From Eutreptiella sp. 'Long Island Sound 2002' (Eukaryota; Protista; Euglenida), in contig OZ038379.1 in assembly GCA_964036045.1 (NCBI GenBank), positions 75,020,001 to 75,084,000 on the forward strand: a stretch of DNA of 64,000 nt. The letters are read 5' to 3'. Position numbers and translations under genes: made by a program. Position 1 is the first letter of the stretch. Every line of letters begins with the position of its first letter. The notes below the pieces were generated by a model. The model ran no database searches, had not been told where the DNA came from, and saw only the letters and a list, made by a program, of their open reading frames with translations. Shown piece after piece: positions 16,190 through 38,122 of this stretch.

Positions 16190-19100
16190 GGGCAGTAATG
16201 CATGCCAAATGTGGTACTACAGCGCCTTCACCATCGGCACCCACAACATAGCATGCTCTTGCGGCAACACCAAATGGGTTGGAGGGGAAGAGGATGCGCC
16301 CCCCGCAAATTTTGGCTCTTTTAGTGGAACGGCTGACAATTGAGAGCTCTAGCGTGCCACAAATTTATGTGGCCCACCAACCTTTAGTCGCAGGCGCCGC
16401 AACCCCTCTACAGCCCTATTCAAAGGTTGCGGACTCACAAAGAGATGGGCCCTTTGATGCCACAGTACAAGATCACTTGCGCCCTACGGAGGTGCGCAAA
16501 CCACCAACCCAGAGGAGCTTAGAGCACGTGCATTACTGCCCTCATGATCTCCCCGTTGAGCACTGTGCCATGACTGACGCCCGTCCCATTTGGGTTGTCG
16601 TGACCCAGAACAGCCAACTTGGGAACACCCTCCAATGCCGGCGATGCACCTGACGACGTGACACAGGAGCCAGCCAGCAGTAAGTGTGGGGCTCCATCCA
16701 CGCAACATTGGATTAGGGCTGGTCACGATCAGCCCCAATGCCGCCGTTGCAACGGACAACTTGGGGAAGAAGTGCGCCACCGGCTTGTGGAAAACATGAG
16801 CTTCCGCTCGCATGCACCAATCCCTCGCCCGTTGTTGCACATCTCCGTCGCTTCCGCCTTGGGTATTGCCTTGGGTATTGTCCACTTGTTCCTATTTGCT
16901 CATGCCCTACATCAACCTTGGTGCCATTTCCCCCCCCCATACACACCTAGTGGTCCACTCGATCATCACCTTCCGTGCCCCTCTTCAACCTGAGCTCCCC
17001 CAATCTCTGCCCGCCCACGAGCCCCACTTGACTCCCTCTTCTCCTCATCATCTACGTTTTGCCCTGCTTCCACGTCCATGGTGTCGCCCACCTCGGCCCC
17101 ACTCGCAAGCAAAGCATCGTCGGCCGTGCCTCCGGGACTCCACTTCCACCCATTCGCTGTTCCGCGTCCTTTGCCGCCCCATCCCCTTATGCCACCAACA
17201 AGCACCCCGCATCCTGCACGGTTCCCCCCTACCGCTGCGCCTCCTCCATGCCCTCTTCAACCATCACCCCGTGTCCTAGGACTGCAGCGCCACCGCCCCT
17301 CCGAGTCCCCTTGGACTCCGCAGTGTGTCCCAACAGTTACTCCTCTGTGGCCACATGCACATCAATGTCCGGAGAGCCGCCCCACTCCGGCGAGCACCCG
17401 TTGTGCGCGCATCCTTCCCCAGAGATCACCACTGCCATCGGCACCGGCGCCCCCTGCATGGGCACCGGTCCTCCCACCGCATGGAGACGATCACCAACAT
17501 ACATACATAGATACATAGATACATACATACATACATAGTCATAGTCATATTCATAACCACTTATCATGCCGTCTACTGGAGTAACCGGGCATCTCGCACC
17601 GACAGGTGGTTCCTGCCTTGCTCGATCCCGTGGGTCCCAGGGCTGCCTGAGGTGGCCCACAGCATGACGGAGGACCCAGAGGACCGGGGATATCGGCCAA
17701 CCAGGCTTTGGGGGCAGTGGCAGCTGCAAAGCTTTAGCATTAGCAACGGCGACGGACGCTGGTCCGTTTGTTCGCCGGGGGTAAAGGGGCAAGGCACAGC
17801 AACACAGCAGCATAGCAACAAGCAGAAAGCAACGGCGTCTCCTATGGGTGCAACGCAGCAACCAAGGTACAAAGCAGCACGCATGCGGCGAAGCAAGAGC
17901 GGGCCCCTTGTTGTTCGCGTACTTCCGCCACCGTGGAGACGTCCACCACCCCATGTAATCCACTGCCAGCCGCGCACACGCAAGAGCCCGTAGATACATA
18001 GCCAGGATTTCTGGGAGGCTCTAGCTTAGCCTGGCCCTCAGCTTTCATCGCCCCCTGGCCCCCATATTGTACGCCGCCTACCCATCGCAGGCCCCACCTA
18101 GTATGGTACAGAAGCATACGGTAGCAACCCCAGACTCTCCGTTGCCCATAACCGCACCCACACCCCAGATATATATACAGTGCCGGTACTCCATGTCAGG
18201 GGCCATTACCCAATCGGCTTCGAGGTACTCGTACACTCTCACGTATATTATACCAAGAGGGTCTACAGGGGGGACACCGGCCGCCCCATGGCGCGAGGGG
18301 CGCAACCCGTGAATGTCGCTGGCTGGGATTTGGGCTGGTGGGTGCCGTAGCTTGATTATCGACCCCCTGTAGGGATACCCACCAGAGGTTCGCCCCGGGC
18401 TGTGCTAACCAGGTTCACCTCATTCGGCCCACATACATTGCCCTCACGCCTACCCTTGACCCTTACCTGCATTGATTGGCCAGCTCCCGTGGTTGCGCCG
18501 CCTCCGCCACAGTAGCGACCAGGCCGCAGCTTCAGCCTCCATCAACGACGTGGCATGCCTACTTATAGCATTGGCCCGCGTGTCACCCCCTGGACCACTC
18601 CACCTTTCTTCACCAGCCGATCATTTGGCTGCTGGTAAAACCAGGTAGGTTACACGTATATAGACGCGACTGTATACTTGGTGCTACGCCGCCGTGCAGC
18701 ACCGCCGCGGGGCCATACCGCCACTCCGCCGTGATGCCGCTGCCACCTAAGAGCCGCCAACGCATGCACCACCGCGACTGCAAGGCCGAGGTCAGACAGT
18801 TAGACTATGTACATGCCCTCAGGTACTGTCCCTCTAGTTTGTTCACGGGGCCAGGGGATGCCCATGCATTCCCCCTGAGTTGTTAGAGGGGTCAGGGGGA
18901 CACCCCAGTACCGCCAAGCGACCCCGTAGTACTCCCACTGTACGGCTCCCCAGTACCGCCGCGCTTCCCCGGTACTCCCACCATACGGACCCGAGTACTG
19001 CCACACATACCCCCGTGATCCCAGTACACAGTCATCTGCGACGCCACGTACCCTTTATGACAACATCTCCCACATCGCCACGCCATCCCAAGTACACCCA

Positions 19101-19300
19101 CCATACGGTCCACCTTACCATCACGCCGTCCCTATCCCCTATCCGCACTTCGCCTCTTCCGGGGCCTTCATGCTCCTCTCCCAACTCCCTGCTCCGATCC
19201 CAGGACCAAGGGGCGTCTCATCTCACGCACTGCAGCGCTGGCGGCGCTGTCGCTCGCCCCCACGCCGACCCGTCAACCCTCGGAGTAACCCGAGGAACCA
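16190..19300. repeat. 3' module, copy 1: decayed RNase H piece, antisense relic of the LINE 5' half, (CATA)n tract, 41-bp minisatellite
   Basis: The same block recurs at 40511-43640 and 50560-53700, and partially at 36460-38122 and 46350-48000, always abutting the LINE C-terminus. Confidence 0.9.
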
Positions 19301-19399
19301 CCCTCGTGACTGCCGTAACCGGGCCGCCGGTAGAGACCCCGGTGTCATGGGAATACCCTACAGGGGTTTGGGCCTTATTACCCTGGTCGGGACGACCCA

Positions 19400-21110
19400 T
19401 GATACCTCACTGTTGTATGTGGCGACCCGGGGCAGGCGGGTGAAGCATCCCTCTCCGACCCTCGTGCACGGGGGCAGTACGGCTCACTATCAGGCCGGCA
19501 CGACCTGTCACACCGCGTTGGCCGTCATACCCCGTCTGCCATCACCGCACACTCAGGCCATGAGGACACTGCTTCCCATGAGCCACCACCGCCGCTGTGT
19601 CCAGCATAGGGACGGTGGCAAGCGTACCCATATCTCCCACACCCTGTCAAGCTGCATTACCCTTGGCCCCCACTGTGTCCGCACCACGCGGTCCGTGATG
19701 CCACAACCAAAGAATCCGCGAGTCACCATCCAGAGCTGCCCACCACAGCAGTAGGGGCAGGGCCGCTGTCGGCGCACCGGGGCATCTCACCCCTTCCACC
19801 CGGACGCTCCTCAGGTCACCCTGGATTGCCTTCCAGGCACTTGACGACAGCTGCCCAGAGTGCCGTAGCGCCCGCCTTGCTTTAGGCCACCCCCTACCGG
19901 CACGCTCCCGACGCGACCCGCAAAGTGGGGCGGAGGCACACTGATGTACCCAAACCGGCGCCGTCTCCCTGCACCCGTGGCATCGCAGCGGGAGCACCGA
20001 CCGCGACGGGACGCAGCCGCCACCACAGCACTGCGACCACAGGTCCTGCCACACATCACAGCACGCCTCCTGGAGGCAAAGCAACGCACCCGGCAGCGCT
20101 CGTGCAGTGGCACATTTGAGCAGGCTCCGTCTCGCTTCCTCCCTCGTGGACACCGGGCTGAGTATCGGCTGTCCGTTCGACGTCGTCAGCAGGCTCTCCA
20201 GCAACCGGGGCCAGCGCCCCACCTTGTGGCTGTGTGTGCCGTGCGTCTGGAGCTCCCAGCCATAGTCCTGTACGATCTCCCTGATGACATCTACCCCGTC
20301 CAGCCTCGGGCCCCTGGCGGACGCGAGAACCAAGCGTTGTCCTCCCGACCGAGCCTCGACGACCGCTGCTAGGCCTAAGGCACCAAGGGTGTGACGGGCG
20401 TCGGCAGCCACGTTGTCATCTCCCTCAGGCAGAGAGAACAGTGCCTCCGTGACGTGGCCCTATGCGTCGTCCCCCTGAATCCGTGCAAGCTGCTTGGAAC
20501 CCACTAGCACGGCCATGGACCGCCGCTCCGTCACTGCCGGAATGACCCGTCGCAATTGCTGGTCATACAGGCACAACGCTCCCACGTCTAGCACGGTGGC
20601 CACCGCCAGAACCGGGAGGCCGCACAGAGGTTGTTGGAGGACCGGCAGAACCTCGCGAGGCCAGCCCATGATGTTGCCTACAACCGGATGGTCCGCAAAC
20701 ACCCTGAGCCACGGATCACTCTGGCCATCAGGGCCCCGCACCATGGTACCACGCACCGTGGCCCAGGATTGCGCCGACACCATGCGGGACCGCTCCCGGA
20801 ATGCAGGGTAGTCCCGGGTCATCAAGAACTCGATCCACTGGCTGAAGGCCTGCGCCACTGCTGCCATCCAGTGCGGGAACCAGGACATGGCCTCCTCGTG
20901 CGCGATGTACAACCTCGGCACCAACAGCGCGTGCAGCGGTGCCCTTTGAAAGGTCGCCTGCAGGTTGTCGGGGAGGCCGTCGAACAGGTTCCACAGCGGA
21001 TGCCGCTGGACCCTCCTTGCCGGCGGACAGAAGGGGGTGTCACCCCGCAGGAACGCGTACGCGGCCCTCCTGCGATCTTGCATCGGTGGCTGCATGATCT
21101 GGGTGAACTG
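19400..21110 (-). pseudogene. LINE-A C-terminal extension of unknown function (~550-600 aa) with a C-x2-C-x16-C-x2-C motif
   Basis: ORFs 20460-22088 and 19647-20411 continue past the ARKNH/AWRNH motif. CHGC...LCGS at 19912-19982; sibling copies read CSGC...LCWSC. Confidence 0.75.
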
Positions 21111-21383
21111 ATGGTTCTTGCGGGCATACACATCTTCCCCAGCCTGGATCATGTCCTCCACAAAGAGCTTGGCTTTCGCAGGGCCCCGGGACGATGCCGC
21201 CCGTACCGCCGCGAATAGCCGCTTCACGTCCCCGGGGACGACACCCACCGTCAGGGATTCCGTCCACCTGTAGCCGTGCTCTTTCCACGCCAAGAACTCC
21301 ACCGCCCTGTCCGTCAGGGGAAGGTCCGCAGTGAACTCCTCCACACGCCTGCACAGGAGCCGTGCCACCTCCTCGTCCCGCGC

Positions 21384-21437
21384 ACACAGCAAGCTCATGT
21401 GGCCAATGTCGTCCTCCGGCCCCCCACAGAAGATACA
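21384..21437 (-). pseudogene. LINE-A CCHC zinc knuckle
   Basis: CIFCGGPEDDIGHMSLLC (C-x2-C-x8-H-x4-C). Confidence 0.9.
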
Positions 21438-21769
21438 GGGGTGGGCCGGTATCGCCACACGAGTGAGCTTGTGCCTCCACCGCCGCATGACTTGCATGGT
21501 GGACAAGCGGCCGTCACGCGCCCTTAGCAGATTCCTGTGCGTTGGGCCGTGGTGCACCGCTCCCAGGGGCACCGCCTCACAGGCGCTAGCCAGCGGCGTA
21601 TGGGCCCTGGTGCGCGCCGCCAACGAGCGCCACTCCATCTCCTTGACGTGCTGAAGAGCTTGCATGGAGGGTACACGCGGCTCGAGCTCCCCATCGTCTC
21701 CGGGCACCAAGAGGACGGCGTGTTCCTTGGGCAGGATGAGATGAACAGGCGGGGCCATTGCACGGGCTG

Positions 21770-22160
21770 CAGCAGAGTCCGGCTCTTCAAGCAGGACTGC
21801 CGCAAAATGCGAGCTCTGCCTCACCTCCCAATGGTGCGGCCCCCGACTCTGCGTGGTAGCCGCCGCAGCCCCTCCACTATCCAGTTCAACGCGTGCTGGT
21901 TGACCAGACGTGAGGTCGGTCCGGTTATGCCACAGTATAGGGCCTCCTGCGCCCTGCGCAGGTGCTCTCCAATGATGGAGGCATCCACCACGTGCACAGT
22001 GCACGCCGACGGGGGGGTGTGCAGCAGGTACGCCGCCGCGCCGACGACCTCCGCCTCCAGGACCGTGCCGCGGATGGCACCCGTCCATGTGGGGCTCCCA
22101 TCGCTTGCCACCGCCACATTGGTGGCCCCGTCCCCCTGGGGCGAAGCGTCAGACGACGTG
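21770..22160 (-). pseudogene. LINE-A RNase H-like domain
   Basis: Four acidic residues in RNase H order: SDAS (22148), EAEVVG (22049), VVDAS (21983), EEPDSAA (21777); also LVNQHAL and WEVRQSSH. Confidence 0.7.
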
Positions 22161-23289
22161 ACTTTGGTCGCCGCCGGCACCCAACAGTAGCGGTGGGGTT
22201 CCAGCCATGCCACGTCTGAGTGGGGGCTCTGTGTTACCTTTCCCAGGGACGCCGCACTGGAGGCTGTGAGTTCCGGAGAGAGGACAGCTTTCGGCCGATA
22301 CACCACATGCGGCCTCCAGGCCACGTCGCATCCGCAGACAGACTTGATGGCGTCAAGTGCCGTGGTATACTCCGCCCCCCACACCGCCGTGGAGCAGGAG
22401 GGCTGGTACACCACCACAGAGCCCTGTTCCACTGTCCCGCCATCACGCAACGAGGTGACGGCGACATGCGGATCGTGCAACACGTTGGCTATCCGGACCA
22501 CCTCTGGGACCGAGCACTCATCGGCGTCCGGGGCGGGGCCAGCTGGTAGCAGAAGGACAATTGCCCACTCGCTGCACCCACGCACCGCTGCGCACGTCCT
22601 TGAAAACGCGGGCCGCCCATGCACAACCCACAGGGGCGATGGGTCTATGCCGCTTCCGGCACGTGGTGTGAGCAGGGGGACCGACGCCGGATCCTCCTGC
22701 TGCCGGTAACCTTCGAAGACGTCCCCGAGCAAGAACAGGAGGGCGGCCAGCGGGACAAACGGCATGGATGGCCCCGGGTTCTCTGGGTCCCAGCCGTCCT
22801 CCCTGTACCCGCCCACCACATACGCGTCCCCCGTAGCGGACTGCCTAGTGCGCTTGCTTGCCTTTTTACGGCGCACCGGGTGTATCAGACGGTGAGTCAA
22901 TGGACCGGGCATCTGCCGTCGGAAGACGTCGCGGGGCCCCGTGAATCACACGTGGTCCACGTGAGTGGGCCCAACCCCCGTGTGAGGAAGGTGCAGATGG
23001 TCCTCGTGACACTCCCGGAGCTGGACGGCCCGTTGCCCAGGCTCATGACATGGGAGCCGCGCGTGCAAGAAGTCATTCGCGGGAGCCGTCAGGGACTGTA
23101 CCGCCGCGTCAGTGCGGGGTCCGGAGAGAACGCAGATGTCCCTACCCTTGAAGGTGTAGGACTGGGACGCCCACCTCCGCCCCGCCCACTGCAGCTGCGC
23201 CAGAGTGGCGTGTACGCACCAGTACACTGACGACAGCATGAGGAGTCCCACTCGCAACGTCCCCATCGCCCGGAGTACTCTGTCCACCT

Positions 23290-24800
23290 ACCTGCTTCCC
23301 GCGTGCGTGGCAAACGACGTGGAGGGCACCAAGAACTGCCAGCATACACCGTACTGCAAGTGCATGTCTCGACGCATGGCCCGCAGCTCAGTTCGGACTG
23401 TCGCCGACCGATGGTGCGTGAGCTGAGCGAGGGTCCCTACGACGGAGTCGCGGCAGATGACCTGGACATCCGCCAGTCGTAACCCATGACCAGACCGCAC
23501 CACCACGTTGGACAGGTCCTTGGGCAGTTTCTCGAATTGCAGGGCCGCAGCCTTGATGGCAGCATTCACTTTGACCACAGCCTCTGCCGGCATCAGACAG
23601 ATATGGCGCCGCATACTGCACGATGTCGCCAACCACAGCCGCCATCACCTCATGGGGCCCCGACGCCGGCCCTAGTGTGTTCTTGCACCAGCCCAGTAGA
23701 GCTTCACACCGGAGTACATGCTTCTCCTTCATGGACGCTACCCCCCTTGGATCAAGGCGTAGGCCTAGGTAGGGCACTGTGTCCTTGGCGTGCAAGCACA
23801 CCCATGGGGCTGCCGCGTTTCCCGGTTTCAGGCACACCATGATCGAAGGGATGCGAGCAGTGGTGGCATACGCGCACTTGCCGACTTTGAGGGACATGCC
23901 CATGTCCGTAAGGTACTGTGCGATTGCTGCCGCATACTATAGGAATTGCGGCAAGGAGTGCGCTATCAGCAGGAGGTCATCACAGTACGCTTGCACCCGA
24001 GGCGGCACAGCATGGCGAGCATCTCCCTGAGCCTTGCTGGCAATGCTCCTCAAGAGGGGTTCCAAGAGGAGCAGGTAGAGCACGGCACTCTCCGCACAGC
24101 CCTGCCGCAGGCCCCTGTGGAGTCGAATGCTCGGTGTGGGGCCATGCGCGGTGACGATGCGCACGGGAGACCCGCAGCTGAGGGTGTGGAAGAGCCTGAT
24201 GAGCTCCTCCGGGACCCCCATGTGGCACAGGAGGAGCGCCACCGCCCCATGCGGAGCCGTGTCGAACGCCTTGGAACCGTCAAAGGCCAGGACGTGATTC
24301 TCCTCCCGCCCACGCTGCAGCCTGCGCTGGGCCAGGAACACCGGGGCAGCCGCCGTGGAGCCTGGCATCGCCCCAAATTGCCAGTCCGCGGACAACCCAT
24401 TGCGTGCCACGACGGCCGCGAACCTCCGCATGAGGGGGGTCATGAGCATCCGCATGTTCTGTTGTCCCAACGCTATGGGCCTGTACGCGTCCAGGTTTCC
24501 TGTGGCCGTGCCTTTGGGCAGCAGCCCGATAATGGCCTCATGCCAGGACTCCGGGACGTCCGCACCTCGCAGGATGGCCCGGTACGCGTGCACCAGGAGC
24601 CCTTGCACCGGCTCAGGCAGCTGTGCTATGAGGGCGGCCGTGACCCGATTGGACGCCGGAGCCTTGTCGTCCGCCACGGCTTGCTTCACGGCATCCTTGA
24701 GATCCTGCAGGGTGTAGTCCTGCACCGACCTCCATTCCTCCGGCAGTCCCCGAGGGATGTGGGCCCTGACCAGCCGTTCGAAGGCCGGTAGGTTCACCGG
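23290..24800 (-). pseudogene. LINE-A non-LTR reverse transcriptase and thumb
   Basis: KAPASN, YRPIAL, QFGAMPG, AFDGSKAFD, RGLRQG, AYCDDL (23976-23987), SLKVGKC, YLGLRL. In-frame TAG at 23937. Confidence 0.97.
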
Positions 24801-25559
24801 CCGCTTGGCGTGCAGCGCCTCCCAGTACCTCTGGACCTCGCCGATGACGTACGAAGCCTCCAAGAGCACCTTCTCCGATTCCCGGACGCGTACTGACCAC
24901 AGGCCTGACGGGGCATAGTTCACCACGTTGATGGCCCCCCGGATCGCTGTCCATCGGAGCTGCAGATCCGGCACCCTGCCCCGCCAATAGTCCTTTATGG
25001 ACCTGCGCCCGTTGCTCCTGAGGACACCCCGCAGCTCCTCCACGCGAGTCTCGAGCTGGTGGAGCTGCCGGTCCTGGCGTGCAGGTCCTCCACGGTGGCG
25101 GGGGACAAGTCGGGGTCCACCTGTCGGAGGTGCCGCAGCAAGGCAGCCGCCTCCTGGGAGTGGAGCCCGGCCGTCGCCGCGTCCCGTTGCCACAGCTCAT
25201 GGGCGCGCCACGCTAGGGCCTGCTGATCTGAGAGGACCTGGGCCGCAGACGCCTCCGTCTCCGCCTGCCCATACGGATACTGCGGGTCCATGCCCGATGG
25301 CATGCGCACCCCCGTCACCCTGGACACGTCATCGCGGAAGGCATAGAGCAGGTCGAAGACCGCTGGCACCTCCAACGTGCCCATGGTGGCAGTGTCGTGG
25401 TCCGACGAGAGCCACGCCCGAAGCGTCCGATCCTCGCAGGCCTTCTGCAGCACTGCGGCCGCCGCCTCACGAACCCCCGGGGAGTCCGGGCGTATGGCGT
25501 GCAGCCTGCCTTGGGCGTGCGAGTAGGCCATCCTGGTGACCCTCTCTTTGTCGGCCACC

Positions 25560-26083
25560 GGCAGCGGGATGTCGAGGATCACGGGGCCATGGTCAGACCT
25601 CAGCGACGCAGGAGACCATCCCGGCGCTAGGTGCGGGTGCTCACGCACCGCCCACGGGACCAGTGGCGAGTTGAGCAGGAAGGAGGCCAGCCGATGCCCT
25701 GCTCTCGTGGGCCGCCTGTCCTCCTCCGCTACCGCTCCCGCCCTCTGGAACCCGCATTGCTCCCACGGAGCCTGGAACCTCTTCGTGGTGGGGTGTCCGG
25801 GGAACTCCGGCCACAGGTTGAAGTCCCCTCCGAGGAGCACGGCCCTCGTGCCTCCCGCGCTTTTGGCCCGCATACATGGCCACGCCAGCCCGAAAAAAAC
25901 GCCTTAGACGCCCAAGACTCACCACCACTGCCTGGACCGTGGATGTTGATGACCGTGAGGGTGCCACCCGCGGTCACCACATCAAGGGCCATGGCCTTGC
26001 CGGGCACGATGTCCAGGACGTCTCGAACCTCCTCCGCAGCGAACACGTCCGCTCGAAGGGCAATCAAGAGTCCGCCGCCCACC
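25560..26083 (-). pseudogene. LINE-A AP-like endonuclease, C-terminal half
   Basis: GGGLLIAL, INIHGP, GGDFN (25817-25831), RLASFLL (D to A) and SDHGPV (25589). Confidence 0.9.
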
Positions 26084-26399
26084 CACGGGGGGGGCCGTAG
26101 CGACGGGCCATACGCCGACTCCCTCCCACTCCCGGACCATTTTCAGGGCGGGGGGGGGGGGGGCTGGGTCTGGGGGGGCGGGGGGAGGGAGGGGGCTTGC
26201 CAAGAAAGGGGGAGGGGGGAGGCTTCATAGCCTGACAAACATGGCATAAGGTGACCGCCTCAACGCGGTATACACTTCGAAGCATGTATGTTGGAGAAAA
26301 ATTTTTGAAACAAGAGGGGGGCCTCAATTGGTCAGGTGTGGACCCGCCACTTAGCTCCAGCCGCGCCTGCCTCACGACCTTCATCGCCATCTCAGTTCC

Positions 26400-29040
26400 A
26401 TGATTGTCCGTGTCACGCAGACAGTGCTTTGCAGTTCGTCCCGTCCCTTGTCCTCGGATGGGGTAAGAGTCGGGCTGCTTCTACAGGGTTCAGGGCATTG
26501 TCGCCTTCGGACTGAGTTTGGGGCGTAGCATTTGTTGTGTCCCACTTTGGCTCTCACCGTCGCACTGGCATGCTCGCTTGCGCTGGCCCCTCTCGGCCAC
26601 ACACCTGTGTTTCCGGGTCACCTCGTCGTGGGGGGTGGGGCGGTCACAGGTCACCCTTGTGGGCCACTGCCACCGGCCCTGGGCTATTTAGGTCCTTAGG
26701 GTTTCAAAACCCCAGTGGGTACTGGCTTTTCGGGGGTCAACATACAGCCATACAGAGGGTGGGAAGGCTGGGCGGCGCCGAGGCGCCTGCATGTGTGGTG
26801 AGTGTGTTTGCGTGTGCGGTTGTTCCCTGTGCCAAGTTCCAGTACTTCTCAGAAGGCGGCCGCTGAAGTGGCAGCGCACCCGGCGTTTGCCGTGAGGGAG
26901 GTGGTTCGAGTCCCGGGATCGGTGGTCTCCCACCGATCCCTTCGAATACCGGACGGGACCTCCCATCGGCTTGTTCGAGTACAGGTGGCGGCGCGCACTG
27001 CTGCAGGTGTGTGTGGTTCCTGCATGTCTCTTTTTGGGGGTTGGGGCAAAACGGACGAGACCTCCACCCGATCCACCGGTACCGGTGGTGGCGCGGGTTG
27101 CTGTAGGGGGGGGTGGTTCCCACGACGCCGACTAGAGAGCTCTACGTGCAGGGAACCCAAGAGCACCAGCTCCCGGGATCGAACCCCCGCACTGGACGAC
27201 TGAAGACTACCGCTCTCACTACTGGGCCGTGCCGGTCTCTTGCCCTGTTTGGGGTTTGTGACGCTCTTGGAGTCTGAACCTATGGGGGTGTGGGCTCGCG
27301 TGCATTATGGCGTGCCAAACAAAGGGCGGCTGGGGTCCGGTGTTCCACACCGTGAGCCCTCCGTGCTGCACGTGATCGTGGAGGCCGTTGCTAGTGATCT
27401 AGGTGCCAGCCAGGGCTCGTTACAGCTGCCTGGGGGGGAGGGGGGGGCTGACGAGGGGAAGAGTTCCTGCCTGACGTCACGCATTGGTGTTTGCCGTGGT
27501 GAGCGGGAGACCGCCCGCGACCTCCATCCAGAGGCCGGGTCAGTACAGCCTGGTGAGTGGCGTGGTCTCTTGGAGGCTGGGGTGCAGTCCTCGACTTCCA
27601 GCAGTGGAGTAACTCCCTGTCTGCGGGGGGTCGAGGGGGGGGGTGTGCCACGAGGAGGCGGGCTGGCCGCCCGCTACTCCGGAGAAAACATGGTTTGCTC
27701 ATCCAGGTCGGACTCGTCTTCCTGATCCTGTGCCTGCCCTTCGTGCTGTGGGCGCCGGGCCGAGGTGACATACCCTCGGAGGAGGGGGGATTTGCGGCGG
27801 CCCATGTCAGCCAGTGTGTCCGCGTGTGTGTTCCCTACAATGCCAACGTGTGAGGGGACATGCAGCCAGCGTACCGCTGCCCGAGGAGTTGCTCCCACAG
27901 GTCCACGTGGCCCACCGGCCACCGCGAACCTTGCCAGTCATGGCGCCGCCATTTGCTGGCTTTGCCTGTGGCCCCCATGACCACAAGTTTTGAATCAGAG
28001 CAGATCAGTGTGCGCTTGTGCTGTGTCCTATGGCGAATGGCATGTATGGCCGCGAGGAGCTCTCCCCTGTTATTTGTTTGTTTCTGAGTGATGGGGATGC
28101 AATGTGCCGTGTCCCGGTGATCCCCGAAATATACCCCAAACGCTCCCACCATTCCCGCCTCCGGATGGACCTCCGATGAGCCGTCGGGGTAGATGGCTTC
28201 CCATCCCTCCGCTACATACTCATCAATGACTTTCTGATGCGCCTCCGCCATCGCTGGACCATACATGTCTTTTTTGCGTTTCCTGGGCCGCGGGTTGCGG
28301 AGCCTGGGGGGGGATGGGGGGGGTTGGCTGAGCCTGGGGTGCTACAAGTTTCCTATTTCCCATGAGGGATGCGATTGCTCGGTGCATGTCCCGCACTTCG
28401 GGCGTGGGGAGGGTTGGAGCTGGGTGCTCGTACCATCGCGCAAGAATGCACAGCCACTGTGTGAGGAATATGTCCCATGTTGGGGGGGTGTCTCGGAATT
28501 TGACCGCATTGCGCAGGTTCCAGGATGCCATAACCGCGGTCCACATGATCAGCCCTAGCGGGCTCTGGAGGGATAGAACTGGCATGTCCCACAGGAGGAC
28601 CTGTGGGTCTGTTTCCGTGGTATCCTCGAATATCGCTGGCCCCATGCATTGTTCCGCAATGTGATACGCGGGGGGGAGGAACCGGCACTCCAGAAGCGCA
28701 TGTCGCATGTCTTCTGGTTTGCCATCCACCAGGCAGTGTGTGTGCTGAGGGAGCCAGTTGGCGAGTCAGGTCCCCACTGGGAGTTTTTTCCACAGTGCGG
28801 TCTGTATGAAAGAGTGGTGTTTGGGCGGTATCGATAGCTTGGTCCAGGCCTGCCAGGTTTCCGGTGTTTGACGGGGGTCCGGGGGTTCCTGACGCATCAG
28901 GTACCTGAGCATGGGCCTTGTATTCCAACCCCCCCAGAAAATGGCCGATGTTTCTTGTGGTGGTGTCATCTATGGTCGGGGCCAGGCCTGTCCCAGCTGG
29001 GCCTTGTACCTCGGGGCCCATGTGGGCGGCAGTCTCTCCT
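26400..29040 (-). mobile_element. 5'-truncated L1/Tx1-like LINE fragment (zf-RVT, then RNase H1, then P/S-rich tail) nested in the TIR element; 3' boundary approximate
   Basis: WTKLSIPPKHHSFIQTALWKKLPVGT, CLVDGKPEDMRHALLEC and SWNLRNAVKF are zf-RVT-type motifs; unrelated in sequence to LINE-A. Confidence 0.8.
27800..28195 (-). pseudogene. RNase H1-like domain (cellular/eukaryotic type) of the nested L1/Tx1 fragment, frameshifted near 27880
   Basis: YPDGSS (28183), QTNNRGELLAAI (28060), SDSKLVV (27994), WRRHDW, VDLWEQL, WLHVPSHVGIVGNTHADTLA (27818). Confidence 0.92.
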
Positions 29041-29130
29041 GCAGGTCCGGGGGGGGGGGGGGGCATGGTAGGTGGTACTTTTGTTTAAGGGCATAGCACC
29101 CCCGAGTCCATTCCCGGCCACTATTTCTAG

Positions 29131-29401
29131 GCGGAAATGCTACATCACCCCTGCATTCTCGGGGATCCCCAAAGAGAGGGGGACAAAATCAAAATAGGTG
29201 GGGCCCACAAGTGGGCGGAAATGCTACATCACCCCTGCATTCTCGGGGATCCCCAAAGAGAGGGGGACAAAATGAGAATAGGTGGGGCCCACCAGTGGGC
29301 GATAATGCTACATCACCCCTGCATTCTCGGGGATCCCCAAAGAGAGGGGGACAAAATCAGAATAGGGGGGGCCCACAAGTGGGCGATAATGCTACATCAC
29401 C
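29131..29401. repeat. 84-bp tandem repeat, ~3.2 copies
   Basis: GCG(G/AT)AATGCTACATCAC at 29131, 29215, 29299 and 29383. Confidence 0.95.
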
Positions 29402-29573
29402 AAGGCGGACAAAATCAGAATTGGATGCCTAAACCCTGCCTTTCTGGGAGGCCCACAAGTGGGCAGAAATCGTGCATTCGGGGGGGTCCCAAACAAAGAG
29501 GATAAAGGCAAAAAAAAAGCAAAAAAAACCGTTCCCATGGTGTCCCTGGTCCTGCCTATGGTCTTGCAGATTG

Positions 29574-29641
29574 ACGCCACTGGGGTTTGAACCAAGGACT
29601 TTCGAGTTGCAGGGCACTGCTTTACCACTAGGGCAGGGCCC
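29574..29641 (-). mobile_element. tRNA-Cys(GCA)-derived SINE head, with the 84-bp repeats downstream
   Basis: Minus strand shows A box CTAGTGGTAAAGC, loop CTGCAAC and B box GGTTCAAACCC. Anticodon and acceptor stems are broken. Confidence 0.7.
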
Positions 29642-29904
29642 ATCTCTGACATACCTCTGCACAGGAGTGGTGTGGACATGTGGTCCAAGTTGGTTTTCAT
29701 CCACTATTGGGTTCTCCTAAAATAACTGAGTATTTTGAGTATAGACACATGGGGCAAAAACCCAATTTTTCACCCTCTACTAAGTCAAGCAAAATTTCCT
29801 TAGGGCGCCTTTGGCGCCCATGGTCCGGCACTTCCGGGCCAAAACCCGGCAGGGAGGGGGGGGGGGGTCGGCGTAAAGGGTCCGGTCCCAGCGGCCCCCC
29901 CGTG

Positions 29905-30150
29905 CGCGCACCGCCGCCGCCGACGCCGCCTGGGCATCCAACCCCGGGAATGCATGATACCGATGGTGACGCCACCGATTCTCCGAGTGCACCACGCCTT
30001 GGGGGTCCTGCAGGCCTGTCTCCTGGAAGAGGCCCAGGATGGCACCCTGAGCCTTCAAAAAGCCCGCCCTCACCGCCTCACCGTCGAGCATACCCGGGGC
30101 TACTAGTACGCCGTCCCCCCGCATCGAGCCCTGGACGTTCCAGAACACCG
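29905..30150 (-). pseudogene. LINE-A AP-like endonuclease, N-terminal half
   Basis: FWNVQGS (30127-30148), FQETGL (~30020) and HRYHAF. Confidence 0.88.
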
Positions 30151-32029
30151 CCGCCCGGGTGTCGGAGGCGGGGCCCCTTCACGGCTGTGCCGCTGGACCA
30201 GGGTCCCTCGCTGGATCCGGGTCATTGGACGGAGGTAGAACACCCGCGCCCGGCGCGGGCGGTTGGTGAGGTGACCCTGCTCCCGCCGATCACCATCTGA
30301 GGGGGCCGCCGCCGGTTGTGATCCACCAGACATAGCAGCTGATCCCGCGGCTCCACTGCCCGACGCACTTGCCCCCGTGCCTCCGTAGAAGACGCTGCTG
30401 CAGACCCGCCTGCCCCACTCTGTGCTGCCGACTGCGATGCCCCTTGCCCCCCCGCACGGGCCCTCATGGGCAACGCGAGCGTTCTGGACTTTGCTTGGGC
30501 CGATGCGAAAGGCCCCGCTTGGCCTCCGGGCATAATGCCGGCAAGCATGGCCATCGCCTGGTCCCGTTGAGCTGGGTCGGACCCATGATCCCACAGCAGG
30601 TGGTCCAGAAGGTCCCTGGGGTGGAGGTGGGCGGGCCGGCAGTGCTTGCCGGCTCGCCACGAGCGGCGACCAGCTCCATCAAGCCGGGATCAGGGACAGA
30701 CGTTGATCTCCTTCGACCCACGCTGCTCCGTGGCCAGTTGGCCGCCGAAGTGCTGCAGCACGTACCAAATGTTGGTATAGCTGCCGTACTGGTCTGGGGG
30801 GCTCTGCTTGGGAGGCGGCTTCGGCGCTGTCTTCGGAAACGGTTTTGCCACGGTGGCGAGGGGGGGGGCGGAGGCCGAACCGGTGGCACGCCGGGCGGCT
30901 GCGGTATGTGCAGCATCCTCCCCACGGGAAACTGCTCCTCCACCCAGCGGGGCCAAGCGTCGGCGAACTTCTCCCGGTCGCCCTGGACCTTCCAGTTGGA
31001 CGTGGAGAACGCCTGGAGCCACGGCCCCATGTTCTCCGCCATAACCAGGCGGAGGGCATCTCATCCGCTCTGCCTGCGGAAGCGCATCGCGGCTGAGCCC
31101 ACCACGGTCCCCTAGAGGTACAGCGCCGTGCCTCCGTCGCCACTCAGGGCACCAAGGTGCAGGGCCTCCAGCTCAGCGGGGCGGACCGTGAGCGCCGTGC
31201 CCTCCCCGCGATAGTACACACGCAGTGCCGAGGAGTGGGGCTCCAGCGCCACAACGACCCGACACCACGCCCACGACCCACTGTGCAGCAGCGCCAGCAA
31301 GGCTGCAGGCCTGTTGCTGGAGGACTGCACCGTTGGTGCCCCGGGGAGGGCCGTCGCCCGACCCGGTAGCGCCCTGCACATGGCAGCCGCATGCTCAGCC
31401 TGCCACATGTTGCTTGGGGCTACAGGCCAGACGTCCTGCCCCTGGACCTTCGGTGGTCGCGTTACCTCCACCAACACAGCCGGCGCTTGTGGGAGGTCCC
31501 CGGTCGTGCACCTGTGCGCCCTGCGCACGGGGCCCAGTGACCGGAGGCATTCCTTGAACACCCTGTAGCAGGCCGGGCCCCTTGACTGCTGCCTCCTGCG
31601 CCGGCACGCGGTGACGACGACCCATTCCAGCCCCCTTGCTTCCACCCGAACACAGGCCCAATACGCCGCCCCTTCCAACACCACCAGCTTCCCCATTGCC
31701 GCCATGCCCACCGTACGGGTGGGAGGCACGCCCTCCACGTGCAACCACCGCCTGGCATTCTCCTCCCACGGCTGGGGGGCATGCATCTGCTGCTGTTGCA
31801 TCGCATCCGTCACGTGCTGCAGGGAGACCGTCATCAGCATGGACGTACCCCCATCCGCCGCGGCCATACTGAGCAAGGCATGCTGCATGCGCGCCCCGGG
31901 CAACCCCACGTGGTGCGGGATGTCCGCCACGTTCAAGGGCGTGCGGGGCGCCGGTAGGGCCTTCTAAACCGCAGCGGGCAACTCCCCCAGCGACGGTAGA
32001 CGTGTGATGGGCCCCATGTCCCTGTTGAG

Positions 32030-32450
32030 GACCACCGCCGCCACCCACCGCCTGTCCAGCGTGGACAGGAGGTTGCCCGGCCTCGGCACCCCGAGAAGGG
32101 TACCGAGGGCGGACATGAGGGCGCCCACGCCACAGTCCTTGTCGTTGCTGGCCGGCTGCTACACCTGCGCCGCCTGGGCCGTCGCGAGCAGGTGCTGTGC
32201 ACCCGGCCACTCCGCCCTCTGGCCCCTGGGCGCCATGCGCATCGTCCGGACCGCCATGTCTGAGGTGTGCGTCCATTGGGGCGGGGCCTCTGCCATCACA
32301 GGCTGGTCCAGCGGGTTCACGGTCAACCGCATGTCGGGGGCCAGGGGGTGGTGGGCGGTCCAGTGCCGCATGCCCGGCGTTTCCAACCGGTCGCGGTACA
32401 GGACCTCCGAGCTGCCCAGCTCGACGTACCTCGCAATGAGGAGGGCAGCC
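32030..32450 (-). pseudogene. LINE-A Ulp1/SENP (C48)-like cysteine protease domain
   Basis: RHWT (His at 32363), TVNPLD (expected DPL), V*QPASNDKDCGVGAL (Cys at 32132, read through TAG at 32159) and C-terminal RRWVAAVVL. Confidence 0.65.
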
Positions 32451-33823
32451 GGGGTTTGATCATGCCTCCGGCGCTCCCACCCTTCCCTCGGGAGCTTCAT
32501 GGCGTGGGGGGCCAGTCACTGCGCCACATCGGCGACCAGCACGACCGCGTCGTCGCTGAGCTTCACTGTTGGGTCCGCGGCCACCAAGAAGTGGTGCCTA
32601 GGCCCGGGCTTGCTCCCGGCGGCGTACAAGCCTTCCACGGCGCTCCGCATCTCAACAGGCGGGGGAGAGGCGTCTCCGCAGTCCCGTAGCCAGGGGAGTG
32701 CGCCCGGGAGATGCTGTCTTGCTCCCCCTGATCAGATGGTGGCCCTAAGGACCGGCAAGTCGCGCCAGATGGCCGGAGCGACCGGATCGCGCCAGGACTG
32801 AGGCCTTTCGGTCCCCCATTGGAGGACAGCCACCACCACATGCGTGGTCAAGGGCTCCGCCGTGAGCTGCAACGCCACTCCTCCGTCCTTCTCGATCACT
32901 CTGCCCCGCGGGGCAGTGAAGATGTGGCCCCCGGTCCCACGGACGGTTACCCGTCCCAACAAGTCCGCCACGGTTTCCCCGCTGGGATGGGGGCCGGACT
33001 TCTTGGGCGGGCATCGGCTGTTGGCGGCCCATACGCGCCACTCCACTCTGACCATACGCTCATGGCCAGGAGGCCGGAAAGTCCTATGGCATGCGTCTGG
33101 GAGTTGGCGATGGACGGCGGTCCATACGTCAGCTCCCTCAGCCCGCGTGAATTGGAGCCCCTCCAGGATGTCTCTTTCCACAGGACTGGGGAGGCGGGCA
33201 GTACGAACCTCCAGTCCCTACCCCAGGTGTAGTCCTGGCCCCTCTCGATCCCCCAGCAGCCGGACCACCGTGTCCGCGGCTGCAAGCCGGGCCGCCACCG
33301 TGGGAAGGTGCAGGGAGACAGTCCATGGCTGGGCTGAGACAGGCTGGCGTGGAAGGTCAGGGCAGGCCGCCACAGCACTGCCATCCCTTGCCTAGTGGAG
33401 CGTCCTGTCCCACCATTGCGCCAAGGTACTAGGCGCCGTTGGCAGTGACCAGGACAGGTACGTCACGACGGCCTTAGCCTGCCACTCGTGCGGGTCCATG
33501 CTGGCAGGATGCGTGTGCCAGGTGCACACCCATCCCAGGTTGGCCTCCTGGATGGCGACCATGTCCCTCCAAGGGACCACCGGGAACGGCGTGAGCAGGG
33601 CCGCCATGCCACACGGCAGCGCCACCGCCCACTCGGTCCTGCCCTCGCATGCCACCGCATATCCCACCGCTGGGAGCCCCCCTCCTTGTGCCCTTTCCAC
33701 CACTTCACGCATCAGCGTCCCGTGGCTCTGGGCACGGCTCAGGCTGAGGGCCCCCACGCGGGCAATGGCCTGAAGGATCAGGAGCACATCCTGGGGTACA
33801 CCCTGCGGCACTGGCGGCTCGGG

Positions 33824-33880
33824 GTGGGCGTATCGGCAGACGTCTGCCCGCATGCACCACCCTTTGGCCCAGTGCCTGCA
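33824..33880 (-). pseudogene. LINE-A CCCH zinc finger
   Basis: CRHWAKGWCMRADVCRYAH (C-x7-C-x5-C-x3-H). Confidence 0.92.
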
Positions 33881-34816
33881 GGTTTCCATCTCCCGCGTCT
33901 TGGGCCCAGCCCTGTCCGCTACTCCCATCTCCTGTGGTCCCACGTCATGCACCTCCTTCACCCACACGATCTCCAGTTCCTCCTCTTCCTCCATGGCTTC
34001 CTGCGCTCTGCCGCTGTCCCTACGCTAGTCCTCCTCTTCCATCGCTTCCGTCGCCGGCGGCGGGCCGGCCGCAGCCATGATCGTCGCCAGGGCCGCCTCC
34101 ACATGGGCCTTCACGGCCACCTCCTCAGTCACCTCCGGCGGGCCCTATTACTGCTCCTCCTCCGCGGGCCGCTCCTCCTCTGCTACGTCAGCCTCATGGC
34201 CCGCCGCCTCATCTCCCCCCACCGGGACCGCGTGCGGTTCGGGTCCTCCGTAGCCTCCGCCCGAGTCTAGGCGCATGCCCACCACCACCAGCAGCCCGGG
34301 GTCGCCGCCACAGCTCTCAAGGCGGTAGCTGCTGGAGGTGGGGACAAGGACCGCGCTGTCAGTGGCGAGCAGCAGGCGGTCCGTGCCGTGTTCCCGGAAT
34401 ACGACCTCCACGCCCTCGGGGTGCATCGCCACCAGGAGCGCATGGGACCCTAGCGCTGGGGGCGTGAGGGGCCGCACGGTGAGCTCGCGGCGCCATGCGT
34501 CAGCCCCAACCCGCCATAGGGCCACGTACAGGCCGCTGTCCCGACGCACATCCTCCAGCCCCGCCTTGTCGAGCAGGCGCCCTACCGAAAGGCGCACCGG
34601 CGGGGGGAGGCCTTCCTACGGCTCAGCAGCCGGGACCTTACCGGGGTGGTAATCCAGGACCGCCGCATCCCCCAGTTGGATGCAGCGGACATGGGCATCG
34701 TCCGGGGACTCGGCCACCAAGCTCTTCTCCTTGGCGACCTTTCCCAGGTGCTGGTACTCGTAGCGCTCAAGAGCGCCCTCCAGCAACGCCGCCTTTCGCC
34801 TCCCCGTACCCGTGAG

Positions 34817-35884
34817 CTAGTGCCTGTGGGCACCCTCGGCCGCATGAAACCTGCAGTGCCGCTGCTCACAACTCCCCAAGGTAGGGGGCGGCACCGCGGT
34901 GGGCATGGGCAGCAGCGGCGCGTTCGCCGGGTCCACGTCCATGCCGGCGTAGACGTCGGGCCCGGTGTCATCCTCGTACATGAGGGCCAGCGGCGCCTCG
35001 CCGGGCCCGTACGCCTCTTCATCCCCCACGCTCTCCGCCTCCTGCACTCCCTCCCCTTCTCCCCCAGCCGCAATCACCGCCGGCGGCGTTTCCGGTCGCG
35101 GGGGAAAGGGCGCCAGAGGCCGCTCATCAGCGCCCCCGCCCCTCGCCGCCTCCACCGCGTCCAGCCGTGCGGGCAGGTTGTCGGGCAACCGGGCACCGCT
35201 GGTGCCTGCGTTGAGGTCCATGCTGTACACCAGCCCCGCCGGGCACGGCTCTCCGGGTGCCACCTTGCGCCATTCCCTCCACTCCCACATCCAGTCCTCC
35301 ATTCCTTCAACCTCTGCACGCTCCCCGCTTGGCTCTACGGCCCCATTGCCTGCCGCCCTCTCCTCCATCTCCGTCACTCCCCGCTTAGTACCGGACCCCT
35401 CCGAGCCGGCCTCCTGCGACCGCTCCTCTTTGGCCTCTTCCGCCCTCGGGGTGACATCGGCCAGTGCTTGCGCGATCAGCTCGCCAACGTCAGCCTCCTT
35501 CCCCGCTGCCGCCTGCACGGCCCCCTCGCCTCCCGCGACTTCCCGTCGGTACGTGTCCAGAGCGTGCGCGAGTAGCTCGCTGATGTCTGGTGGGGGGGCC
35601 GCGGCCGCATCCTGCGCCGCAGGTGCCGCCTGCACCTCCGCTGGAAGTCCCCTCATGGGGGGCGCGTCCTGCACCCCGTGCGCTGGGGGCGGACCAGCCA
35701 GTACCGGCACGGGTCCTCCCGGTACCACAAGCGCATGCGGAGCCCCTTGTGGCATGGCCGACTCAGCTCGGGGCTCCGGTGCCGGTGTCGCCCGCGGAGG
35801 TGTACACGCGGCAGCGGGTCCCGCCAAGGGCACCGTCAGGGGTGGCCCAGTCGGCGGCGCCCCCGTCGTCCGAACGGGAGCCAT
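34817..35884 (-). pseudogene. LINE-A N-terminal P/A/E-rich region containing a SIL1-N-like motif (35184-35273)
   Basis: 355-aa ORF with EWRKVAPGEPCPAGLVYSMDLNAGTSGARL. Confidence 0.6.
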
Positions 35885-36459
35885 CCCCCCTGCCGTGTCT
35901 TGGGATACTTACCATCACCATACACAACACCATGTGGCACAACAACACCCCCGGCAACAACCACAACATGCGTTCGCTCCGCCGCCACAACATGCGGTGC
36001 CGGTCCCCCCAACAGCGCAGGTGGGGGGTCCAACAGCGAGTGCACTCAGTGCGCGGGCGACGCCCGCGCCCCCGTCATCTCCTACACCGGGGCTGGGAGT
36101 GCAGCAGCCGGCGGAGTCGTACGGAGAGGCGCAGCGCGTAATGGATGCGGAATTGTGGCAAAGCAGTCGGGTGTACTTGTTGGGGTGGGAAATGATGCTG
36201 CATCAGGGGGAACCCCAAAGGGTGGTGGAAGAGGTGATGGTGATGGATTTGGTGCTGGTGATGGGCGCCAAAAGGCGGGAACAGCAGAGGCATGAGGCCT
36301 GGGGGCGGAGGCATCAGAAATAGGTGCCCTCCCGGTACCGCATACCCGGGCCAACTCGCCGCCGGCCCCATCGGGTCCGCCCGCGCTGCGCGTCCTCGAG
36401 CTGCCCGAGATCATCTTGTAGACGTCGGAGTAGTCGGTTGAGCAAGTGTACCCCGAATG

Positions 36460-38122
36460 GTTGTTGCACATCTCCGTCGCTTCCGCCTTGGGTATTGCCT
36501 TGGGTATTGTCCACTTGTTCCTATTTACTCGCGCCCTACATCAACCTTGGTGCCATCCCCCCCCCCCCTACACACCTAGTGGTCCACTCGATCATCACCT
36601 TCCGTGCCCCTCTTCAACCTGAGCTCCCCCAATCTCTGCCCGCCCACGAGCCCCACTGGACTCCCTCTTCTGCTCATCATCTACGTTTTGCCCTGCTTCC
36701 ACGTCCATGGTGTCGCCCACGTCGGTGCCACTCGGAAGCAAAGCATCGACGGACGTGCCTCCGGGACTCCACTTCCACCCGGTCGCTATTGTAGCCAGGG
36801 TTTCTAGGGAGCTCCAGCTCAGCCTGGCCCTCAGCCTTCATCGCCCCCTTGTCCGCATCCTATAGTCCATCAGTACTTGGTGCCCCCCGGGGCATCTCTT
36901 TTGGACCCCCAAACCGAGATACATCACCTCATATATGCACACAGTAATATTCCATTGCCACTAATAGCCGGCAACAGCACCCACGGTAAACCCCCTCGGT
37001 ACCCTACATATATAAGACTGTGTCCCCCACCTCAATGCAGCACCATGAGCTGACCCGTGGTAATTGTACATACCCTCTTATAATATAACACGAGGATCAA
37101 CAGGGGGGATGCCGGCCACCGCGCAGCATGAGAGGCACAACCCGTGAATATCGTTGGCTGCAATTCGGGCTTGTGGGTGCCGTAGCTTGGTTATCGACCC
37201 TCTGTAGGGATACCCCCCAGAGGTTCGCCCCGGGCTGTGCTAACCACGTTCACCTCATCTGGCCCACATACATTGCCCAGACGCCTACCCTTGACCCTTA
37301 CCTGCACTGGTTGGCCAGCTCCCGTGGTTGTGCCATCTCTGCCACAGCAGCGGTTAGGCCGCAGGCTCGGCATCCACCGACGACTTGGCATGTTACACCA
37401 TAGGCCCGTGCCTCAACCCCTAGACCTCTCATATAGGCACGCTGTACAATGGTACATCACGGGCCCGCCCATGCCATGTTCCCCCTGTGTAGCCCTGCAT
37501 GCTCGCAATCACCGCGCAGGCTATGCTTGCTGCTACTGCTAGTGTGTCGCCCCACCGCCCACTCGCACCGCCACCGGGGCATACCGCCACACCAGCGCGT
37601 TTGCCTATTACCCGCTAGTGCCTTTCCCCGTGCTCACAACCGCCATCTCCCCTGCCGCCTTGCTAGTGGCTTCGTGTGAAGAGGTCAAATGGTTAGGCTA
37701 TGTACATGCCCGCAAGCATTGGCCGTCTATCTTGTTTGTGCGGCCAGAAGATGCCCCAATACTCCCTCTGAGTTGCTTCAGGGGTTAGACGGACACGCCA
37801 GTACCTCCGTGAGTTGTTCCAGGGGTCACAGGACAACCCAGTACTCCCACCCAATCGTTTTTGGGACTTGTGGGCGGCCCCAATACCTCCGTGAGTTGGT
37901 CCTGGGCTCAGGGGACACCCCCGTACTCCCAGAGATTTGCTTCCGGGGCCCATGGGCAGCCCCAATACCTCCCTTGGTTGATCCTAGGGTCAGGGAACGC
38001 CCCAAGAATCCCACAGAATTTTTTCCGGGGACTAGTGGGCGGCCCCTATACCTCCGTGAGTTGGTCGTGAGGTCAAGGGAGACCCCCATACCCACGCAGA
38101 TTTTCTCGTGGGGCCCGTGGGT
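36460..38122. repeat. 3' module, partial copy (alpha type) with 41-bp minisatellite at 37760-38122
   Basis: 36460-36780 matches 16831-17150; 36795-38122 matches 46350-47602. Confidence 0.9.

Follow-up and report, generated by a model that had tools for sequence, protein, structure and literature searches.

A likely relic of a giant, spliced-leader-headed APE-type LINE with a predicted Ulp1-like protease in a euglenid genome

Long interspersed nuclear elements (LINEs), which are retrotransposons lacking long terminal repeats (non-LTR), usually measure 4 to 8 kb and have a small RNA-binding first open reading frame (ORF1). The ingi/L1Tc elements of trypanosomatids, hosts that belong to the Euglenozoa too, measure about 5 kb; they contain a single ORF and a C2H2 motif, encode a 2A peptide and end in poly(A). 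The elements of the LINE family described here are 21.5 kb long; dozens of copies are intact, and selection has acted on 4,608 codons. It is represented by a decayed, 5'-cut copy in a stretch of 64,000 nucleotides of euglenid DNA (Eutreptiella sp. 'Long Island Sound 2002', assembly GCA_964036045.1, contig OZ038379.1, positions 75,020,001 to 75,084,000), called the window below and numbered from its first letter. The copy occupies positions 17497 to 36460 on the minus strand, on which all of its features given below also lie. It is likely to be an old, broken member of a family of giant LINEs of the euglenid genome, with an endonuclease of the APE type, two ORFs, a spliced leader (SL) at its head and (TA)n as its target.

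In the literature searched, Ulp1-like proteases of non-LTR elements have been described only for the NeSL/Utopia lineage, whose endonuclease is of the restriction type (PMC4640811). The nematode elements NeSL and Utopia-1_TSP carry a Ulp1-like cysteine protease inside the element protein, as is predicted here (PMC4640811). They have, however, a single ORF, a restriction-like endonuclease, an N-terminal protease and SL or U2 genes as targets, whereas the present element has an APE endonuclease and its protease candidate lies deep in a separate ORF1 of 2374 amino acids (aa). Dualen/RandI elements of green algae resemble it in their large size, in the order APE, reverse transcriptase (RT), RNase H, and in the presence of further C-terminal sequence (PMC4640811, PMC9977147). 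Dualen is defined by APE together with a restriction-like endonuclease, whereas the C-terminal extension seen here has no PD-(D/E)xK motif by eye and no Pfam or PDB match; moreover, in contrast to the single ORF of Dualen/RandI, the element has two ORFs; it also starts with an SL and has (TA)n as its tail. The elements described as having an RNase H domain are those of the I group, Dualen, Proto1 and the L1 of plants (PMC4640811). Ingi/L1Tc belong to the I group, of which RNase H is typical, and share the APE-RT-RNase H order; unlike them, the proteins of the present element contain no NPGP motif of the 2A 'StopGo' type. According to PMC1874656, the Pr77 internal promoter of ingi/L1Tc gives unspliced transcripts. 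SL relics at the 5' end of retro-copies in DNA, as found here, are known from dinoflagellates (PMC6050394, PMC12014239). There the leader tags host retrogenes and ends in AG, permitting re-splicing, whereas the Euglena leader ends in CG and heads an autonomous LINE in at least 214 copies. Finally, LINEs that target microsatellites, listed in PMC4640811, share with the present family a simple-repeat tail and insertion into the same repeat; in our case target and tail are (TA)n, often over 100 bp. No paper on the Euglena LINE family studied here was found in the literature.

The structure of the family was established on four young copies, and every protein analysed is that of a natural copy, not of a consensus. 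In the reference copy, cC (G000:C12:38057487-38077486), the element has a total length of 21,516 bp and comprises a leader relic followed by a 5,384-nt 5' leader, ORF1 (2374 aa), a TGA codon, ORF2 (2234 aa) and a 2.3-kb 3' region, the two ORFs adding up to 4608 codons. A second copy, cB, is 99.1% identical to it across 20,049 bp, a 5'-truncated one, cA, is 99.6% identical, and a distance of 21,561 bp separates two head-to-tail copies. At the DNA level, about 2,000 places in the 2.28-Gb genome resemble the RT region, and for 51 of the 100 RT protein matches that were scored the frame stays open over 2233 aa or more. Intact members of the family have spread recently. The preliminary description of this DNA had proposed a very large non-LTR retrotransposon with over 4000 codons, and was right on both counts: APE and RT are recognised by Pfam, and intact relatives reach 21.5 kb and 4608 codons. 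It had also pictured a single polyprotein with the endonuclease in its middle. This did not hold, the intact copies being made of ORF1, a TGA and ORF2, with the endonuclease opening ORF2. The ends of the element, that is, the 3' region, the 5' leader, the SL start and the (TA)n tail, had been missed.

At the 3' end, (TGACTA)3(TA)n follows GGTTA in all seven loci where the end was found, out of nine 3' loci fetched. The 5' ends vary, and cA, two other copies (L033 and L034) and the window copy are all truncated. The 5' leader contains about three diverged tandem monomers of some 700 bp each, and its five longest ORFs have no Pfam domain. Mouse L1 promoters consist of tandem 5' monomers, which the leader monomers recall; a promoter role for the latter is putative.

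Aligned against cC, the window copy shows 79 to 84% DNA identity in three coding blocks: cC 3868-4163 corresponds to window 36460-36154, cC 5149-11002 to window 35677-29905, and cC 10995-18114 to window 26083-18934. Further on, cC 17431-19736 matches the 3' region of the window copy at 78 to 84%, and cC 19736 falls on window position 17496. The remains of coding sequence cover positions 19647 (approximately) to 36460, in agreement with the span of 19300 to 36460 first proposed, whose lower limit fell short of the element's end, the 3' region continuing to 17497. The upper limit, taken correctly as a cut, lies 264 nt inside ORF1, and the 5.4-kb leader is absent. The 2.3-kb non-coding 3' region, placed at 17556-19646 by alignment to cC, contains, as judged on the intact copy, no ORF that is both long and conserved; the terminus itself (17497-17555) reads as decayed (TGACTA)n then (TATG)n, which goes back to the (TA)n tail. 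Stops and frameshifts break the ORFs of the window copy.

Since the region is rich in GC (62 to 70%) and has long open frames on both strands and in all frames, ORF length alone proves nothing. The ratio of non-synonymous to synonymous substitution rates (dN/dS) was calculated codon by codon between the window copy and the young family, with the same segments read one base out of frame as a control. It was 0.11 to 0.18 in ORF2 up to aa 1700, 0.30 to 0.33 in the C-terminal extension of ORF2, and 0.24 to 0.55 in ORF1, as compared with 0.8 to 2.7 out of frame. In view of this difference, both ORFs, extension included, evolved under purifying selection along their whole length.

At its 5' end the family begins with a piece of host RNA. 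The 3' end of the SL is TATTTTTTTTCG (PMC4778363), and the SL exon followed by GT occurs at 1358 places in the genome. At least 214 copies begin with the Euglena SL: TATTTTTTTTCG joined to ATGTCTTGCAGATATTTG is found at 214 places, versus none in a reversed control. Nine further 5' junctions set the true start of the element at the leader. The part retained ranges from 4-14 nt up to the complete ACACTTTCTGGGTGTCTATTTTTTTTCG, one copy (L054) having the whole leader. Shortening affects the 5' side only, and the leader always stops at its own splice donor (CG, the gene continuing with GT), always at the same element base. At another locus (L060, G000:C8:74638331-74639154), processed host exons are joined to the LINE's first base. 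The host pieces are found again, in the same order, in a multi-exon locus at C1:26.689-26.697 Mb. The last host exon, at C8:63820975-63821152, ends GAG/GTATGT. This locus is a cis-spliced host-LINE chimera copied back into DNA. Together, the SL junctions and the chimera indicate that a genuine 3' splice site precedes the element's first base and serves in trans-splicing as well as in cis-splicing. An alternative acceptor, a CAG 11 nt downstream, was discarded, as no genomic copy has SL-ATATTTG.

Could the leader have been acquired in another way, by insertion of the element into SL RNA genes, as in SLACS, CZAR and NeSL, or by a switch of the RT to SL RNA as its template? Small RNAs can be taken up as new templates by LINE RTs. 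LINEs specific for SL genes are known in trypanosomatids and nematodes (PMC4640811). Such an origin is nevertheless extremely improbable here, since the DNA upstream of the leader is (TA)n or unique sequence and not SL-gene sequence, and since the leader ends exactly at the donor, joins one fixed element base, is trimmed from the 5' side only and shares its acceptor base with the host-exon chimera. Trans-splicing thus accounts best for the start of the element. A difficulty is that daughter copies have CG in place of AG before the splice site, so that the route to re-splicing is unexplained. The simplest reading is that there are few source loci. Only five exact-match copies lack the C at position -2, when these were sought as a possible master copy with an AG acceptor; one copy (L059) has TGCAG directly upstream of the element.

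As a separate observation, the stretch just 5' of the ORF1 ATG (L023:3840-3902) is pyrimidine-rich and contains three AGs (CCTTAG, CACAG, GTTAG) within 35 nt. The stretch might serve as an acceptor for internal trans-splicing and so give rise to a shorter mRNA of ORF1. Retro-copies of such an SL-ORF1 mRNA were sought in the genome and not found, a result that is uninformative on the RNA itself.

As to the target, (TA)n borders the 5' junction in 14 of 16 full-length cases; every tail that could be read lies in a TA repeat, and the tails are often longer than 100 bp. In some cases two inverted copies have one (TA)n tract in common, tail to tail (L038, L039), and other tracts join head-to-tail copies. 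Both flanks are usually (TA)n, which masks any target-site duplication. The commonest 5' junction falls within the leader's TCTAT, and this fits microhomology with the TA repeat.

ORF2 has APE N-terminal to RT within one ORF, its RT is of the non-LTR type, and the element has no LTRs. In the intact protein, APE is found at aa 11-254 (Pfam Exo_endo_phos, PF03372). In the window it is split by a later insertion, the start of ORF2 with the N-terminal endonuclease motif SWNVQG mapping to 29905-30178 and the C-terminal part to 25589-26083. RT is found at aa 621-866 (Pfam RVT_1, PF00078; E=6e-19 in the intact protein, 1e-12 in the window piece, at 23757-24494), and its best PDB matches are R2 (1e-16) and LINE-1 ORF2p (5e-14). 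Relatives of this RT were sought by two word-index searches and one exhaustive HMMER search, which returned nearly exclusively fragments from the same species or unnamed metagenome proteins. Besides the metagenome, matches outside euglenids were one Artemia protein (25% identity) and one thrips protein named Tx1. A language-model search with RT gave no clade information.

The RNase H-like domain (window 21752-22186) is predicted from motif spacing. Residues D1402, E1435, D1457, H1516 and D1526 of intact ORF2 form a D-E-D-H-D set conserved in three families, including P0186 and P0208, which are 30 to 33% identical here. Their spacing is 33/22/59/10, and that of E. coli RNase HI is 38/22/54/10. 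A D-E-D-H/R-D set is known for LINE RNase H domains (PMC4640811), and the spacing in ORF2 fits it. The language-model neighbours of the region are RNase_H (0.88). Two results count against the assignment: neither PF00075 nor PF13456 matches, even with E allowed to reach 10, and BLAST detects no similarity with the RNase H of P0235. The RNase H named in the preliminary description is accordingly retained as to its conserved residues and lacks a Pfam match, and its activity is a prediction.

Downstream, a CCHC zinc knuckle was located by motif scan at window 21384-21437 (CIFCGGPEEDIGHMRLLC in the intact copy, aa 1640-1657). It is kept in P0208, and P0186 retains the Cys residues with a Glu at the His position. 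The remaining C-terminal extension (aa ~1700-2234, about 530 aa; window 19647-21257) finishes with a zinc-ribbon-like CxxC...C...CxxC motif at about 19904-19982, and both the extension and this Cys motif are shared with P0186, at about 33% identity. The CCHC and the long extension, both part of the original proposal, are thus present, and the extension is conserved and under selection. It has no match in Pfam or PDB, and a search of ORF2 aa 1201-2234 for a restriction-like endonuclease in Pfam, NCBIfam and PDB profiles, as well as for PD-(D/E)xK by eye, was negative.

Upstream of the in-frame TGA, the window holds a remnant of ORF1 (30182-36460), corresponding to aa 89-2374 of the intact protein. 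In the intact copy, ORF1 has repeats rich in His and Pro, a zinc finger of the CCCH type, and a core that is conserved and includes a C-terminal Cys/His motif. That this region belongs to the same element as the endonuclease, as had been assumed, is borne out by its linkage in near-identical full-length copies and by the more distant L062 family, which has the same core directly upstream of an ORF2 only 39% identical. The CCCH finger, at aa 1126-1144, is recognised by Pfam zf-CCCH (E=2e-4 in the window piece, 1e-5 in the intact copy) and, like APE and RT, was correctly named at the outset; it is intact in the window copy (33824-33880). A Trp-rich motif of 31 aa (EWRQVAPGVPCPAGLAYSMDLHAGTSWARLP, window 35183-35275) is conserved as well, being 48% identical over 31 aa to that of the L062 family. 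Its identification as SIL1-like had to be dropped: aa 501-1100 gave no Pfam match at E up to 10, and a PDB search with aa 631-710 returned only a designed Kelch-repeat artefact. NCBIfam added nothing to the domain assignments. The repeats, at aa ~100-500 (L024:300-1500), are about four tandem units of some 75 aa, rich in His, Pro and Gln (HxHHHHHH...VEYPHPLPQQ...); the window copy is about 500 nt shorter at 35677-36154, which implies that the repeat number of ORF1 differs between subfamilies.

Within the ORF1 core we find a candidate cysteine protease (window 31865-32587), very likely a member of the CE clan (Ulp1-like), with an enzymatic activity that is predicted from conserved motifs. Its residues are His1634 (HW), Asp1650 (VDPLG), Gln1703 and Cys1711 (QQPAGNNKDCG), at window positions 32365, 32317, 32158 and 32134; in the decayed window copy the Asp is replaced by Asn, and the first Gln of the QQP motif, preceding the oxyanion Gln, is a stop. 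The order His, Asp, Gln, Cys, with the oxyanion Gln ahead of the Cys, is that of the CE clan, with a His-16-Asp spacing and a QQPxGxxKDCG motif. Ulp1 itself has a His-17-Asp spacing and QQPNGYDCG. The Cys is invariant in 10 sequences, and all four residues are kept in the L062 family, which is 31% identical in this region. In a language-model search, 67 of 100 neighbours were Peptidase_C48 (top score 0.94, 175 shared features), and the ten best named neighbours were all C48 or CE clan. Two models of the region were built, one of 400 aa from 27 sequences, with a predicted local distance difference test (pLDDT) value of 35, and one of 241 aa from 10 sequences including the distant L062 homologue, with a pLDDT of 52. 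In the latter, the His and the Asp are on neighbouring strands and a helix begins right after the Cys. Foldseek placed SENP5 in the top rows (E = 0.08); in a VIA structure search, eight of the nine best chains were named CE-clan proteases (Z 3.4-3.8), the ninth being an uncharacterised Legionella protein; SENP, Ulp1 and NEDP1 are the named fold matches. In an unbiased structure search, the only chains to span the whole domain belonged to the CE clan (ranks 28, 29, 36 and 42), at noise level.

Two connected matters of interpretation concern this segment: whether it is an enzyme of the Ulp1 family at all and, if so, what it would cut. A coincidental motif, or a degenerate module with a binding role, would agree with several results that weigh against a protease. 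Pfam PF02902 (Peptidase_C48) has no match on the ORF1 protein at E up to 10, and the 46 matches listed in a genome-wide PF02902 scan have ORF sizes that do not fit ORF1, as judged by size without mapping back. PDB sequence and profile searches with the region gave nothing. The language-model recognition value, 2216, is under the 2300 line, the pLDDT values of both models are as low as stated above, and none of the fold matches rises above noise (E at least 0.08, Z at most 3.8) or reaches any line of significance. On the other hand, the four residues stand in Ulp1 order with a spacing close to that of Ulp1, and they are maintained between families that are 31% identical in this region; C48 or CE-clan proteins take the first ten places among the named language-model neighbours, CE-clan chains are the sole whole-domain structural matches of the unbiased search, and the modelled helix starts directly after the Cys, all of which argues for an enzyme. 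We therefore regard the absence of a Ulp1-family enzyme as quite improbable. The protease claimed in the preliminary description is upheld by its conserved catalytic motifs, its language-model neighbours and weak fold matches, although Pfam is silent.

If the segment is a protease, it might process the element's own translation product. The TGA between the ORFs (window 30179-30181) is the same codon, in the same frame, in three young copies, in the window copy and in seven others that differ from the latter by about 10%; the distant L062 family, whose ORF2 is 39% identical, has an in-frame TGA there too. In the focal family there is no ATG between this TGA and SWNVQG, the Asn of which is the counterpart of the essential Asn14 of the L1 endonuclease. 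The first ATG lies downstream of SWNVQG, so that starting there would remove the essential Asn, and either read-through or re-initiation at a non-AUG codon is required for ORF2. Reading through the UGA would give a single ORF1-ORF2 polyprotein of about 4,600 aa, which the Ulp1-like protease would then cut. Conservation of the in-frame TGA in all of these copies, the lack of an ATG before SWNVQG and the conserved catalytic residues all agree with such a scheme. CE-clan proteases, moreover, process polyproteins in adenoviruses, poxviruses and African swine fever virus. Evidence on the other side comes from the RNA after the TGA, which is no more stable than shuffled sequences (z = -0.29) and thus offers no structure promoting read-through, and from the junction, near which no Gly-Gly or Ala-Gly site is conserved across subfamilies. 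An 'AGG' that was considered as a cleavage site there is present in young copies and not kept in older ones. L062 has an ATG eight codons past the stop, just before the endonuclease, which makes re-initiation as plausible as read-through; in the focal family a GTG stands just before SWNVQG, which would allow re-initiation at a non-AUG codon of the kind described for human L1 ORF2. Taken alone, read-through is a fairly probable way of reaching ORF2, and re-initiation a substantial possibility of lesser probability. The self-cleaved polyprotein is more doubtful, and the still broader picture of a virus-like euglenid LINE lineage, with an SL-capped 21.5-kb RNA, a read-through polyprotein and self-cleavage, outside every described non-LTR clade, appears unlikely.

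The reading that we prefer, a two-ORF, SL-headed, (TA)n-targeting LINE, suggests the following cycle. The template RNA has its 5' end made by splicing, so that complete DNA copies start SL-ATGTCTTGCAG. It encodes an ORF1 protein with His/Pro-rich repeats, a CCCH finger and a core that contains the Cys/His motif and a protease, probably Ulp1-like, and an ORF2 protein with APE, RT, an RNase H-like domain and CCHC in this order, plus the conserved extension; the latter protein would be reached via UGA read-through or non-AUG re-initiation. Integration would proceed within (TA)n by target-primed reverse transcription, for which the RNA would pair through its (UA)n tail with a nicked TA repeat, and the 5' junction might be formed by microhomology of the leader's UCUAU with the TA repeat. 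In what is the weakest step, the protease may cut the ORF1 or ORF1-ORF2 product, or it may strip SUMO/ubiquitin-like modifiers. Two further facts weigh against this cycle. ORF1 is preceded by a leader of 5.4 kb with 45 ATGs, which is hard to square with scanning; and as to expression, the library type is unrecorded for the contig runs that hold element sequence, and an estuary metatranscriptome gave five small pieces. It may be mentioned separately that the longest contig in the published E. gracilis transcriptome measures 21,550 nt, near the 21,516 bp of the element and the 21,561-bp spacing of the tandem copies, its identity being unstated in the paper (PMC4778363, Table 1).

What is new here is the set of at least 214 SL-headed copies, the host-exon chimera at the same splice site, and residence in (TA)n. 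The element widens what a non-LTR element can carry. It also raises the questions of how ORF2 is expressed across a conserved in-frame stop, how ORF1 is translated behind a 5.4-kb leader, and how copies that lose the upstream splice signals are reactivated. About a third of the E. gracilis genome consists of unclassified repeats, and LINEs make up only 1.5% (PMC11252322); families such as this one probably fill part of that gap. The host genome contains other repeated open frames, of 1182 aa, with a Peptidase_C48 domain detectable by Pfam (for example at C1:197535377, C1:84247907 and C11:30342262), so Ulp1-like proteases are present in at least one further multi-copy element.

The 3.8-kb insertion that interrupts the window copy, already recognised in the preliminary description, is real and foreign to the LINE. 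It appears as a gap in the alignment to cC at 26084-29904 and has terminal inverted repeats (TIRs) of about 40 bp, with arms at 26088-26127 and 29859-29901. Its inner 2.7 kb is a high-copy repeat, 95 to 98% identical to many loci. The insertion splitting the endonuclease is thus itself nested, the outer TIR element carrying the 2.7-kb repeat (7,980 first-look candidates); it also holds an 84-bp tandem repeat at 29130-29480.

Other LINE remains surround the copy. Between 36793 and 57931, again on the minus strand, a related family of LINEs has left several ORF2 fragments, truncated on their 5' side and arranged head to tail; they have 67 to 72% DNA identity to ORF2 of the young family, and a similar 3' module follows each. 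Three LINE 3' ends in the window (17300-17560, 41680-41860 and 51740-51920, minus strand) share not only the tail but the same ~130 bp beyond it, TGGTGATCGTC...GGGGCGGCT. This common DNA may reflect either duplication of a block including the LINE end, the last two being spaced by about 10 kb, or landing in the same repeat.

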